A DNA stretch of 54,802 nt, filler included, from Calcarisporiella thermophila CBS 279.70 (lineage: Eukaryota; Fungi; Calcarisporiellomycota): assembly GCF_041956535.1 (NCBI RefSeq). It is 8 parts of 7 records of this genome, joined end to end, with 100 filler letters (N's around TTAATTAATTAA, not from the genome) between each part and the next. Parts side by side here need not be neighbours in the genome. Positions count along the whole stretch, not along the records: positions 11,908 to 21,038 come from NW_027192196.1; 7 more parts are not named here. One strand, 5' to 3'. The notes under the pieces are model-generated. The model saw only the letters and a list, made by a program, of their open reading frames with translations, ran no database searches and had not been told where the DNA came from. Below, in pieces: positions 11,908 to 21,038 of this stretch (its first letter is position 1; each line of letters starts with the position of its first letter). The translations under genes and the position numbers were made by a program.

Positions 11908-14117
11908 CGCTATGAACTGTATCCAAAGTTTAATCCGCACATTAGACTACAGACCTGGAGAAATTCAAGCGCAATTTATGGCGGTTGGGTTTGATGGCGC
12001 AGTCGCAGAAATAGTTTCATGTTTCACCAGCGGTGGCACGCTTTTGCTTCGTTCGGATGAAGACCTAAAGAAGTCATTGTATAAAGTACAATCTTTGATA
12101 ATAACGCCCACTGGACTTCAACACTTGGAGCCAGAAAATGTTCCTAATCTTCGTGTAGTGACGTTGGTCGGAGAATCTGTGTCACGAGCACTAGTGGAAA
12201 AATGGCTACCTCATGTAAGGGTGTTCAACGGCTATGGTCCAACAGAAACAAGTTTGGGCACCAGCATACAGGAGCTCGAGAGCAAGAAGAAAGTCGGGGT
12301 TGGACGCCCCTTCAACAATGTATCATATTATGTACTAGATCACAACATGGAAAAAGTTCCAGTGGGTACCGTGGGTGAGCTGTATATCGCTGGTCCAGGT
12401 GTTTCCAAGGGATATATTAATAGACCAGATCTTACTACCGAACGATTCATTAAGAATCCTTTCAAGCCTGGAACCACCATGTACAGATCAGGAGATATGG
12501 TTCGGTGGAACCAGGATGGAAATCTGGAGATAATCGGAAGGGCAGACGACCAAGTCAAACTAAATGGTTACCGCTTAGAGCTTGGCGAGGTGGCTGCCGC
12601 CCTCAGTGCATATCCCGGAGTCGAATTAGGGGTTGCCTTGATCAAAGACAGCACACTGATCGGGTTTGTTTCGCCAGCCAACGTGGACACTGAATCGCTT
12701 AGAGAATCGCTTTTCGATTTCCTCCCAGAGTACATGGTACCTGCCATCATTATTGCACAGGAGAGTTTGCCAATGACGGTCAATGGCAAGATTGATAAAG
12801 CCAAACTGGAAGAGATATCACTTCCAACCTGGAGTCTTGAACTTCCTCTGACAGACACTCAAAGGCTAGTGATCCATTGTATCGCGTCCGTTCTCAATAT
12901 CGATGCCGACCTTATTGATCTGCATTCATCATTCTTTTCCCTTGGGGGCGACTCTATTTCAGCCATTGCGTTGGTTTCTGCTCTCAGCAAACATGGCCAC
13001 AATCTCAGCCTTCCCCAAGTATTCAGAGCACTCACGCCGGCAAGACTAGCTGCTCTAATGCAAGAGAAGCATGTTACACCGGCTCTCCCCTCGGACAGTG
13101 TGGTTCAAGCCGCTTCTGACCTCCAGAGCCTAATTATTAAGCTTATGGCTGAAGTCCTCAAGGTTGACGCTAGCCGGATTGACCACAACACGTCGTTCTT
13201 TGCTCTTGGTGGCGATTCGATTTCCGCCCTTTCCTTGGTCTCCGCCTTCCGCCAAAACGGTCTTCCTATTACACTCAAGCAGCTATTCAAATCACCTACG
13301 CCAGCAAGACTAATAGCTGAATCTTCCCTATCTGAGGAAATGACCACCCAATCTGTAGCTAGTCATATGGACCTCAACCTCCCCCAACCCGCCCCTTTGA
13401 AGCCTATTCGAATCCTCTGTTTGCATGGCTCAGAGATGAACGGAGAAATTATGCGATTGAAGATGGCCACTTTAGAGAATGCTCTCAGTTCGTCCATCAC
13501 CTTCCAATATATTGACGCATGCTTTAGTTCTACCTCATCTTGTAAGTATAGTATTGTTCTTCACGAATTATTTTACCTCTGCTTAACTGAATTTCTCTAT
13601 AGCCACCCTGGAAATACGTAAATTCTACGATGAGCCGCTGTTAAGATGGCTCCCAAGCGAATCCCCTCAAAGCGCACACGTGAGACGAGCTATTCATCAC
13701 GTACTCGCCTATTTAACTCTTGAAGGGGGAGTGGATGGTCTCCTTGGGTTTAGTGAAGGATCGTGTATAATCGAATTGCTTGACCGCATGGCGGAGAGTG
13801 GGGAGATTCAACGACAATGGAATTTCAGTATCCATATCTCGGGTGCTATGCTTAATGCTACGCCTGATTCCGAAAATATTTATGCCAGCTGGGCAAGGGC
13901 TGAGTCATGTCCACGTATAGCCATTCCTTCCGTTCATTGCCTGAGCCCTAAAGACAATAACTACCAAGGAAACTTGGAGATCCGTGAACGATATGATCCT
14001 GCATTGAGCCACTCTCTTGAACACGATCTCGGCCACACTATCCCTCAAACCTTCGAGACGGCTAATCTCCTGGGGTCGCTTATTATGGAAGTAGCGAAGA
14101 AGAGCCAAAAATGTTAA
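11908..14117 (+). CDS. 3' part of NRPS: A(partial)-T-T-FSH1 serine hydrolase; intron 13542-13602
   Basis: A motifs FDGAV, NGYGPTE, GELYIAGPGVSKGY, YRSGD, GRADDQVK, LPEYMVP, NGKID. Two FF.LGGDSISA carrier motifs. The GTAAGT..TAG intron fuses in frame to a hydrolase with GFSEG, SPKD and HDLGH. Confidence 0.92.
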
Positions 14118-15728
14118 CTTATAGCAGCAGGTGGTCATTGATACTAGACCTTTATGGCCATCCTACTTTAATTATCTCTGAAAACAAATTATACTGAACA
14201 TTCTACTTTATTATTTGATCGCTTGTTTTCTTAGATACAAACTGTATTGTCAATATCCTCTATAAATATAAATATCTTATTTCATTCTAACACCATCATT
14301 TCTAAGAAAGCTATATCTAGACATCCAACAATTCCTTATATGATGAGGAAGCGCAGCAGGAATCACCCTCCCTATCAAATTCAGACCTGTTGAGCATATA
14401 ACCTCTCCATAACCTTTTTTTAAGTACACTATTTGTAGAGCGGCGTTTATGTTTAGCTTGCCTGTGCACTTATTTCTTTTAGACATTTGATTTTTGAGCA
14501 AGATCCAAATTCATGAACTCTGGCTACCCAGCGAAATAGCAAACTAAGCCGCCCAGGAATCTGGCCCAGCTGATGAATGCTTGGGAGCCAAATCCAGCCA
14601 TGGTTGCAGACGGCTCTCATTCCATCGTTGAATTTTCGGGTCAACTCTCCAAGACCTTCAATCTTACCCAGTCAATCATTGGGGCTAAAATTCTGGAGCT
14701 ATTCATAAGCCGGAGAATGCAATACAGCCGAATTATTTGCCAAACGGTATCAGGGATTCACAAGCAAAAGGGATGGAGCAAGTAATGTAATTAGGCAGTA
14801 GGTCTTGGCTGCTTCTTTGATATAAGCCTTTCGGAGCTACCATTACATGGTATCCACTCTTTAAGAACCGATTAGAGCTTCTTGAACGCAAACTACCTTA
14901 AATAAATGGTATACTGTATGTTTTACCTTTGTGCGAGTATTCATCCTGTGGGAATCGCAAACCTACCAACGTGATAAAATAGCGTTTTTAAGCCCTACAT
15001 CGTAGCACACCAGCCAACCTTAGAGCCGGCCATGGAAGTAAGTAATAAATTTAAAAGACTACCATGAACTCAAACAGGATTGCCTTACGGCACTAGTTCA
15101 TCACGATGTACTATTTATTTTATATTTTTTGACAATAGTACGTATCCGCTCACGATATGCTGAGAATGGTTTTGCGCAGCTTGTAAACCGAATACTAGCT
15201 ATAGCAACGAGGGAGATTACTAATAATCGGCCTGATATCGTACCGTTGTATCCTAAAACCCTGTCATACCCTCCGTGAATCTCCGTTTAGGTACTAATTA
15301 TTTCTCAACCGGTGCCCAGCTTCGTGGGAATGCGTAGGGTCAATGCGAGCTTGTTGCGAAGACGGGCGTCTCGCTCTCCACTGCGGCATGACCAAACTGA
15401 GACTAGCTCGGAACTTGCAGAAGGCTGCGGAATTTTTTTCACGCTCGATGAGATGCAAGGTTTCCGGCATTTGACGCAGCCAGACTCGTGATTTGTGGGG
15501 AGGGTTAGCCGCGGGCCGTTGCCTATAGAAGGTCTTGACTCACATTGCCCTCTCGCGCAGCAGACTTGTGAGTCAAGGGCCTTGACTCAAGGTCCGTGCA
15601 GGAATCCGATGCGGGGAATCGAGGGTGGTGATTGGCCGGCGCCTGTGGCCCAGTCTCGGGATTTGCCCCGAAGCTCGCACTTATAACAAAAGACAGGCTC
15701 CAGCAAAGTGCTCGCTACCGCTGCAAAA

Positions 15729-18435: not shown

Positions 18436-18839
18436 GACGAGCAAAACGGAAAAGATAGCAAACATATACGAGGTATTTCATAAGCAGCAAAGGCGATTAG
18501 TGGTCACTTCAATCTAGAAGAGGTCACTCAATGAGTCAAATGGAAACCTTAAAGATTTAGTTATAAACCACTCGAGATTGCACTTGGAAAATTATCGACT
18601 TCAGACGTCATGAAGCGTATATAGTTGAATTGAATCATATTAAACCATGTGCGAAAAACAATAATTGGTAAGGATCTTTTTCAAGAGATAAGATCCATCC
18701 AATTTCAATTGAGGTGTCATAAGAGGTACTAGGGGTATTTACAGCGTTTTACATATGTTGTTTTATCATATCCTGTAATTTAAAATCATGATATCTATCT
18801 GAGAAGGAGTAGAAAGTTAATAGTCAAAATTTTCAAACA

Positions 18840-20524
18840 TCATATGGTCGCTAGTATTGGCCCATTGAATTCGCCCTTCATGCCCATCTCCCAAACCAAT
18901 ATTTTGCGAGAGCCAATGATGATGGCAAGATAGGCAGATACGGAACTCTTTTCGCACCATTTTCTTATGTCGGAATTCTTCCAATAACTCAACAATTGGT
19001 CTCGTGGCCCTCCCCCTGATTGAACCCACTGAATAACCGTCTGGCGATGCCGGAAGCGATCGCTGTAATTCAAATGAAGCTGGGCTAAGGATTGGGGGGT
19101 CGAAAATATCGCCATGAGACAGTGCCTTCTGGCCATGTGTGTGTTGGAAATTGGGCCACAGGCGAAATATCAAGATATCCAACTGGATAACTTTTAGCTC
19201 AATAATTACCATGCGATGCATATTTGGTATATGGATCATTAAATTGATCCGTCCCTTTGGATCATTCACCTGTGAAAATAAGACCAAAGTATCATCCCAC
19301 TGGATTCTGAGTGATAAAAACGGCTGCCCTATGAAAATAATATCTTGCCTTTGTAATGTGAAAATCTCCAAAGCTCCGCCGTAGAAGCGGGATATTGAAA
19401 ACCGAAATGAGGCTATCACGATGCTGTTCGTTCTTCTCAAAAGCACTGCATTCGACATTGCGAGTGGCTATTAGCTTTTGGTAACAACCCATAAAGGGCA
19501 GGATGTTTCCAGCCGACGTAATAGCTCGGAGGGCATGTTCAATATCCGATACCCGCAACTTATGGTGTTCTAAAATAGCTAGGACGAACCGATTTAAAGC
19601 CGTATTATTCGGAATTTGCAGATACTTGTTAAGTTGCTGACTATCGAAAGTAAGACTGCCAACATAGTACATCAAATTTAGCCATGCCGTATTGCTCTCT
19701 CCGATTCCTACCTATAAAAAATGGGAGTAAAATGAGTTTCTTTATATATAGTATTATCACAAAATCTTCTACAACACACTATATAAATATAAAGATATAG
19801 AAAACTTACCCTAAGTGAAAGAGGATATTCCATCTCCATAGACCTATTTAGAATTTTGGCGTCCCAGGCAAGGTTACTTGATAAATTATCGATTTTCGAG
19901 GTAACTTCTTCGAGCACTGTGAATGCCATAGACGATGAAGTAAGTCTCAGAAGCAACCTCTCAGAAATTTCAAAATTGGAAGGATCAGAAGTATCCATTG
20001 GGCATCTTCTCAGCAAACACTGATATAGCACGAAAAAACAATTGTCAGTTAAGTATCGACCATGTGCTCTACTTGTGCCTAATACCTATTTGTAAATATT
20101 TTAAGCAAAAATTTGTGTTGAAAACATATGGGCCTTCCGTGGTTGGAGAGAAGAGATAGCCGCCGAAATTATATTCCATAATTTGAAAATGTCGTATTAT
20201 ATCATGAGATGAGTTGCATACGCCGGGGAGTTTCAGTGCGGCCAACACTTCATTTTTGCTAAGGCCACAGAGTCCAGAGGGTAGTGGATCAGTAGATATA
20301 TTCGTTGCGAAATCGATGGCGCATCTTCGGTCGGCCAAGGAGAGTGGTGTCACGCCAGTGATGAAACATTTATTGAGGCGTTGATATCCCATACGACTCT
20401 TCACACATGCCCAGAAGTCTCTAAGTAACGAGTGTCTATTTTCACGAAGCATATCCCGGTCGTCACGATCATCGATATTTAGAAATTCGTTGGTAAAAGC
20501 ATCATATTCGTCAGCCAGAAGATA
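18840..20524 (-). pseudogene. AAA-ATPase-like (PF09820-type) plus PD-(D/E)xK nuclease gene, frameshifted and Tc1-disrupted
   Basis: Walker B YLLADEYD, FITGVTPLSL, LCGLS, FGGYLFS, GRINL..IIELK, IIIGSRKILVWEM. Split over several frames; the 5' part is cut off by a Tc1 TIR. Confidence 0.75.
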
Positions 20525-21038
20525 CAGGTTGCCGAAAAACTGTTGCAATGATATGTCATATTTCCTATATTAATTAATTAATCAATAACTACCCTAGAAG
20601 AATGATCGGAATATTATTGTAAAAATGTACAACATTGAGACTAGTTTTATTAATACGTGATATCCATGTTTAAAAAAGAAAACCTATGTCCTTTACAGAT
20701 ATACCACTTATATAGACAGTTTTCACAAATTGCGTATTGCACTCTTTTTTACTAATATTTTGTGTGATCTCCTTTTGCATTATATACAGCACGCACTCGC
20801 TCCGGCATGCTTGCATAGAGCTAGCTGACAAATTCTACACCTATGCTTTCCCATTCTTTCTCAATACGTTCCTATAGTTTATCCTTGTTCTTCGGAAGTC
20901 GTTGATAATAGCTTAGCCTTCGTTTCAGTTCGCTCCACATATGCTCCATTATATTGAGATCAGGAGACTGCGAAGGCCATTCTAGCACATCTATCCTCTT
21001 GTTTCGTAACCATTCCCTGGTTACCTTGGACGTATGTC
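20525..21038 (-). mobile_element. 3' end of a second Tc1 family element (transposase C-terminus plus TIR)
   Basis: Near-identical reverse complement of 24404-24953 apart from a ~40-bp deletion. TA|CAGGTTGCCGAAAAACTGTTGCAA terminus. Confidence 0.9.

Follow-up and report, generated by a model that had tools for sequence, protein, structure and literature searches.

A fused FSH1-type hydrolase as the probable built-in release domain of a multimodular NRPS from Calcarisporiella thermophila

Fungal nonribosomal peptide synthetases (NRPSs) are known to release their products via terminal condensation (C), reductase (R) or thioesterase (TE) domains, and the malpicyclin and malpibaldin NRPSs use a canonical TE. 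Known members of the FSH1 family (PF03959) are stand-alone proteins, and those tested, such as LovG, release polyketides. LovG is reported to be an alpha/beta hydrolase with FSH1-domain structure that serves as the release thioesterase of lovastatin synthase (PMC10512364 and a title cited there). Bushley and Turgeon reported in 2010 that BDEG_03514.1 of Batrachochytrium dendrobatidis has the order T-C-T-A-T followed by FSH1, and did not give its function (PMC2823734). The beauvericin and bassianolide synthetases (T2a-T2b-C3), which are iterative, bimodular enzymes with C-domain release, carry tandem carriers before the release domain, and these twin carriers are partly redundant (PMC5457498). 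The malpicyclin and malpibaldin NRPSs of Mortierella alpina are bacterial-like, multimodular enzymes with dual epimerase/condensation domains, and their peptides contain D-residues (PMC8070225). Calcarisporiella thermophila is a saprobe that has been placed as sister to other Mucoromycotina (PMC10079182).

In the present study, we analyzed a 54,802-nt stretch of C. thermophila (Mucoromycota) DNA, called the window here, in which positions 11908-14117 contained the 3' end of a large multimodular NRPS gene with the order A-T-T-FSH1. Exon 1 of this gene was 100% identical to VTP21DRAFT_10237 on scaffold MU987569.1 (L001) of C. thermophila. The piece began at the edge of an N gap, and the N-terminal part of the last adenylation (A) domain was located inside this assembly gap; because the A domain was cut by the gap, A-T-T-FSH1 represented the last module of a much larger NRPS. 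Two further NRPS fragments, separated by N gaps of 4009 and 2682 nt, were found upstream on the same scaffold, and both were preceded by an additional N gap of at least 1512 nt. The first fragment consisted of the end of an E domain, C-A-T and the start of another E domain, and the second consisted of A-T and the start of an E domain. The E domains were recognized by their EGHGRE and RTVGWF motifs and by matches to paralog E domains (E-values from 1e-9 to 3e-13). C-A-T modules whose core motifs were intact recurred along the scaffold (E-C-A-T-E start, gap, A-T-E start, gap, A-T-T-FSH1), and the simplest reading is a single NRPS of at least four modules, composed of E-C-A-T units and ending in A-T-T-FSH1, which would be continuous over the N gaps. 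The 454 nt before two of the gaps were 94% identical to each other, suggesting that collapsed repeats probably caused the gaps.

A single stop-free frame extended from 11909 to the intron donor at 13541 and encoded the end of the A domain, two carriers and hydrolase residues 1-47. On the plus strand, the C-terminal part of the last A domain (11908-12800), with motifs A4-A10 all present, was followed by carrier T1 (12845-13066; GGDS serine codon 12953-12955), carrier T2 (13109-13330; GGDS serine codon 13217-13219) and the first part of the FSH1 domain (13400-13541; LCLHG at 13415), which was in the same exon and frame as A-T-T. The rest of the FSH1 domain was located in exon 2 (13603-14117, plus strand), with the Ser at 13752-13754, the Asp at 13953-13955, the His at 14034-14036 and the stop codon at 14115-14117. 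Pfam was run exon by exon. Exon 1 matched AMP-binding (4e-26), PP-binding twice (4e-30) and FSH1 (3e-7; profile 3-47; 30.7 bits), and exon 2 matched FSH1 (2e-14; profile 71-204; 54.1 bits), the gathering cut-off being 21 bits. No match to Thioesterase (PF00975) was observed in either exon at E-values up to 0.1. The original prediction, made from the sequence alone, of an A-T-T unit followed in frame by a hydrolase with LCLHG, GFS(E/Q)G, Asp and GH motifs was confirmed by the single frame and the Pfam matches, and the Pfam comparison it had proposed between FSH1 and Thioesterase was decided in favor of FSH1 on both exons. For the alignment, scripts and trees, the joined domain was represented by the public protein P0001 (VTP21DRAFT_10237 model).

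The intron within the FSH1 domain was located where it had been guessed, at 13542-13602 on the plus strand; it was a 61-nt, phase-1, GT-AG intron (GTAAGT..TAG) with a branch-like TTAAC. A phase-1 intron was found at the same codon in the paralog VTP21DRAFT_4724 (L004), the chytrid Polyrhizophydium (L002) and the oomycete Aphanomyces cochlioides (L087), and in Chytriomyces a phase-1 intron occurred two codons later. The intron was absent in the paralog VTP21DRAFT_8115 and in Batrachochytrium salamandrivorans, where the FSH1 domain read straight through. Judged from the splice signals and the relatives, the intron is real, and its presence in an oomycete as well as in two fungal phyla points to ancient descent or to a transfer among eukaryotes. 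The fusion was independent of splicing, because the first FSH1 strand shared an exon with the carriers; in the paralog L005, T and FSH1 were encoded in one intron-free frame. In the public model of VTP21DRAFT_10237, the natural stop is spliced past to a last exon near 15315 (15315-15520). We rejected this exon as a probable annotation error, since the direct stop gave a 28-residue tail behind the His motif, the very length found in two paralogs.

To place the hydrolase, we compared it with the FSH1 and TE families. In the family profile, the Ser (of GFSEG), Asp and His aligned with three residues of yeast FSH1, namely Ser110, the Asp that follows the strand, and His218, so that the triad claimed in the original prediction was recovered both as codons and in the alignment; its residues are intact, and its geometry is predicted from the alignment. 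The N-terminal LHG motif and the triad both occupied FSH1 positions. The acid residue lies late in FSH1 proteins, as it does in the window domain, and soon after the nucleophile in TEs. A profile built from 25 relatives matched yeast FSH1 (1YCD) in the PDB at 7e-18, and this profile gave no other PDB match below 0.1. Pfam FSH1 was matched by 25 of 25 family members and Pfam Thioesterase by none of the 25. As a stand-in for the window domain, we used the predicted structure of the domain of paralog P0122 (50% identical; pLDDT 93). The top match of this model was 1YCD (TM 0.75, Z 22.7, 205 residues), indicating that a P0122-type domain has the predicted FSH1 fold. The next matches were carboxylesterases and acyl-protein thioesterases (Z about 17-18), and the scores against the TEs TesA and ClbQ were lower (Z 16.5 and 15.1, respectively). 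The model was without the large lid of NRPS thioesterases and resembled the small acyl-protein thioesterases and carboxylesterases.

In an alignment of 27 domains, the nucleophile was Ser in 25 and Cys in two, His was present in all, and the acid was Asp or Glu in 23. The residue following the nucleophile was Glu in the window domain and Gln in 21 of the 27 relatives, a difference that weighs against the release role discussed below. The two Cys nucleophiles (GxCxG) among the four C. thermophila paralogs were found in P0121 (VTP21DRAFT_4724) and P0124 (VTP21DRAFT_9675), the other two paralogs having Ser. The window domain thus resembled PF03959 members in its above-cut-off match, its triad positions and the fold of the paralog model, but it differed from the known members in being fused to an NRPS and in belonging to a separate clade. 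It was similar to a type I NRPS thioesterase in its terminal position after the last carrier and in its putative GxSxG and His serine-hydrolase chemistry, and unlike PF00975 in its Pfam and structural scores. By these comparisons, the domain is a member of the FSH1 family rather than a canonical TE, as had been predicted, and most likely it functions in the manner of a terminal thioesterase, although it does not belong to that class.

A search with exon 2 identified many NRPSs of 1600-6600 residues with FSH1 at or near the C-terminus. The fusion occurred in three more C. thermophila paralogs and in 13 chytrid genera, namely Spizellomyces, Globomyces, Terramyces, Thoreauomyces, Polyrhizophydium, Quaeritorhiza, Batrachochytrium, Geranomyces, Phlyctochytrium, Chytriomyces, Zopfochytrium, Dinochytrium and Boothiomyces. 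In Aphanomyces cochlioides, a T-FSH1 protein was encoded beside an A-domain gene. The phylogenetic tree placed the fused FSH1 domains on one side of a branch supported at 100/97, with 36 rows (including eight short members, mostly chytrid or fragments) against 22 other FSH1 proteins; the tree was unrooted, four long or duplicate rows were omitted, and the set had been gathered with the window domain as the query. The window domain was located inside the clade of carrier-fused domains. These results suggested that FSH1 would have been recruited once, in the ancestry of this chytrid-centered NRPS clade. The Calcarisporiella domains were placed beside Thoreauomyces (98/84), and an AU test did not reject Calcarisporiella as sister to all others (p 0.41); we therefore claimed no direction for a horizontal transfer from a chytrid. 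An origin of the fusion in bacteria was rejected on the basis of a non-exhaustive scan with one short pattern, which yielded one stand-alone FSH1 in bacterial genomes, with no carrier or A domain nearby, and neither a fused copy nor a nearby carrier or A domain in 80 metagenome loci.

Several members of this group showed individual features. In A. cochlioides (L087, 6604-8994), the A gene and the T-FSH1 gene were 15 nt apart, the intron was the same as in the fungal copies, and the FSH1 domain nested among chytrid ones (94/80), which is a hint of transfer between eukaryotes. P0174, a metagenome protein of 663 aa, contained a condensation domain followed directly by an FSH1 of the fused clade, and no carrier was detected between them. 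In Spizellomyces punctatus, an APH-type phosphotransferase domain followed FSH1 (P0134:4815-5027; Pfam 5e-6), which is either a genuine additional domain or the result of merging genes in the call.

These data allowed a comparison with the described NRPSs. Like the window NRPS, BDEG_03514.1 ends in a carrier and FSH1 (IPR005645), and the B. dendrobatidis proteins of this architecture (the P0149 cluster, which may correspond to BDEG_03514.1; the newer locus tags differ) fell in the same fused-domain clade as the window domain. However, BDEG_03514.1 is a short, monomodular enzyme with one terminal carrier and is known from annotation only, whereas the window NRPS, from Mucoromycota, comprises several modules, includes E domains and bears two carriers in tandem. 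The window NRPS shares tandem carriers before the release domain with the beauvericin-type synthetases, but its carriers are of different origins and its presumed release domain is a hydrolase. The arrangement C-A-T-C-A-MT-T-T-C was not found, as Pfam detected neither an MT nor a terminal C domain in the last module of the window. The Mortierella alpina NRPSs are similar in being multimodular enzymes of an early-diverging fungus with D-residues in their peptides, and differ in their dual epimerase/condensation domains and canonical TE; no Mortierella protein was present among the identified matches to the fused FSH1 domain.

The twin carriers were then compared with the other carriers of the family. 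Both carrier serines were intact. T1 grouped with the internal carriers that precede E domains (83/85), and T2 grouped with the terminal carriers of the paralogs (95/87 and 90/90, the former with the terminal T of P0121). The T1-T2 linker (13061-13108, plus strand) resembled the linker that joins T to E in this gene's upstream modules; over the 16 residues behind T1, the match scored 25, a value reached in 0 of 5000 shuffles. An internal-type T1, a terminal-type T2 and a leftover T-to-E linker fit a history in which either an E-C-A block was lost in frame or recombination duplicated a carrier, and, most likely, the twin carriers are a remnant of one such event. They would probably be partly redundant. 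The only other clear A-T-T-FSH1 end was found in Thoreauomyces P0128, and a single terminal T was present in the paralogs with a resolved end and in most chytrid members. The tandem carriers plus FSH1 described in the original prediction were thus present in this NRPS but were not a feature of the family, and they suggest a local rearrangement.

In about 30 proteins, FSH1 was located within about 20-120 residues after the last carrier, and the full-length fused proteins showed no further release domain behind it. In Polyrhizophydium stewartii, an exact A + T stretch of 168-169 residues was common to P0003, which ends in FSH1, and to P0006 and P0065, where a reductase domain takes the place of FSH1. 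That FSH1 and a known type of release domain follow near-identical A-T ends indicated that the two have been exchanged in one slot, which points to a release role. From the terminal position, this exchange and the LovG precedent, we infer that the chain is transferred to the serine at 13752-13754 and then released. It is quite likely, on this evidence, that the FSH1 domain is a built-in release domain. The last A domain would load an amino acid onto a carrier, the upstream C domain would add this last amino acid to a chain rich in D-residues, and the serine of FSH1 would accept the chain from the phosphopantetheine arm, whereupon FSH1 would release it. The domain would then act like a type I thioesterase, although it comes from a different alpha/beta-hydrolase family.

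If the domain does release the chain, the outcome would somewhat more probably be hydrolysis to a linear peptide acid, since the fold is small and esterase-like; cyclization or transfer to another nucleophile carries a smaller but appreciable probability. E domains were found in the upstream modules and not in the last one, suggesting a series of D-residues and a final L-residue. This pattern is also found in TE-cyclized peptides, so cyclization is a plausible outcome. More tentatively, the zoosporic fungi and Calcarisporiella might possess an additional NRPS off-loading class, derived from FSH1 and biochemically undescribed, that macrocyclizes or transfers D-rich peptides rather than simply hydrolyzing them, with different outcomes for the Ser and Cys variants.

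Other roles for the domain were weighed against release. A built-in, type II-like editing thioesterase would clear mis-primed or stalled carriers, with the product leaving by spontaneous cyclization or through a separate enzyme. The small, lid-poor fold of the predicted model, near acyl-protein thioesterases and carboxylesterases, could also fit such a role, and stand-alone FSH1 genes are dispensable in some clusters (FUS5, PMC10512364); the strictly terminal position after the last carrier without another release domain and the exchange with a reductase domain in one slot nevertheless make editing unlikely. The intact serines of both carriers, together with the second A-T-T-FSH1 end, that of Thoreauomyces, with an FSH1 domain sister to those of Calcarisporiella, would suit a tailoring ester hydrolase or acyltransferase that acts on the product or on a T2-held chain, with the twin carriers as a hand-over or oligomerization stage. 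However, end-resolved paralogs and most chytrid members have a single terminal T, and T1 is followed by what is left of a linker to an E domain, which a deletion scar would be expected to show, so that a tailoring function is quite improbable.

We also considered whether the gene copy is decaying or non-functional after an internal deletion, with the hydrolase as a passenger. The signs of a lost E-C-A block and the interruption of the gene by N gaps would be in keeping with decay, but the 2.2 kb were free of stops and frameshifts, the triad and splice signals were intact, as were the motifs of the A domain and the serines of both carriers, and the tail had its native length, all of which makes decay very unlikely. 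It is less probable again, and already largely refuted, that the hydrolase belongs to a gene of its own or that a canonical thioesterase was mistaken for FSH1. Two methionines in the T2-FSH1 linker could start a short transcript, but there was no intergenic space, the first FSH1 strand was in the A-T-T exon, and the paralog L005 encoded both domains without an intron. A misread TE is contradicted by the Pfam counts among the 25 family members and by the structural scores of the paralog model (Z 22.7 to FSH1 versus at most 16.5 to TEs).

Release by the fused FSH1 domain is consistent with the non-standard built-in release module of the original prediction, as far as its terminal, in-frame position is concerned. 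The implied rarity of such a module did not hold: three paralogs and 13 chytrid genera carry the fusion, and the architecture of BDEG_03514.1 had been noted in 2010. In the open literature (subscription journals being mostly outside our coverage), we found no functional characterization of a carrier-FSH1 fusion, no products of fused NRPS-FSH1 enzymes and nothing on C. thermophila NRPSs. One earlier mention of the architecture exists; its spread, single clade, shared intron, R-domain exchange and Ser/Cys variants appear to be undescribed, and NRPS-FSH1 probably marks an uncharacterized route of peptide release. If FSH1 does release the peptide, a whole clade of large NRPSs from chytrids and an early-branching Mucoromycete has an unrecognized release domain, and genome-mining tools would wrongly conclude that these enzymes have no release step. 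C. thermophila, a thermophilic saprobe that can be cultured, has four paralogs (two Ser and two Cys) that allow a direct bench test, and its domain may provide NRPS engineering with a small, heat-stable release enzyme.

The gene neighborhood was also inspected. A cytochrome P450 gene (15729-17922, plus strand; public gene call L001 13818-16011) was located directly downstream of the NRPS on the same strand, and its exons matched Pfam p450; from its position, it may encode a product-tailoring enzyme. Three TGA(C/G)TCA sites of the AP-1/Gcn4-type consensus were found within 55 nt (15536-15589), just upstream of the P450 gene, where 0.06 would be expected per 500 nt (P ~5e-5 by a rough pair shuffle that was picked after the sites were seen). 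These sites may tie the P450 gene to amino-acid or stress control. A fragment of an AAA-ATPase_like (PF09820) gene (20072-20548, minus strand; 5e-8) seemed unrelated to the NRPS, and the ORFs beside it at 18817-19458 and 19708-20031 (minus strand) had no Pfam match. ABC and MFS transporter genes flanked the C. thermophila paralogs (L005 1618-6004 and 27361-29091; L004 21169-22992). The Chytriomyces NRPS (L090) was located between DAHP synthase and threonine dehydratase genes (L090 1-905, 2671-4475 and 20186-22229 being listed with the neighbors), which suggests a supply of precursors for aromatic and branched-chain residues.
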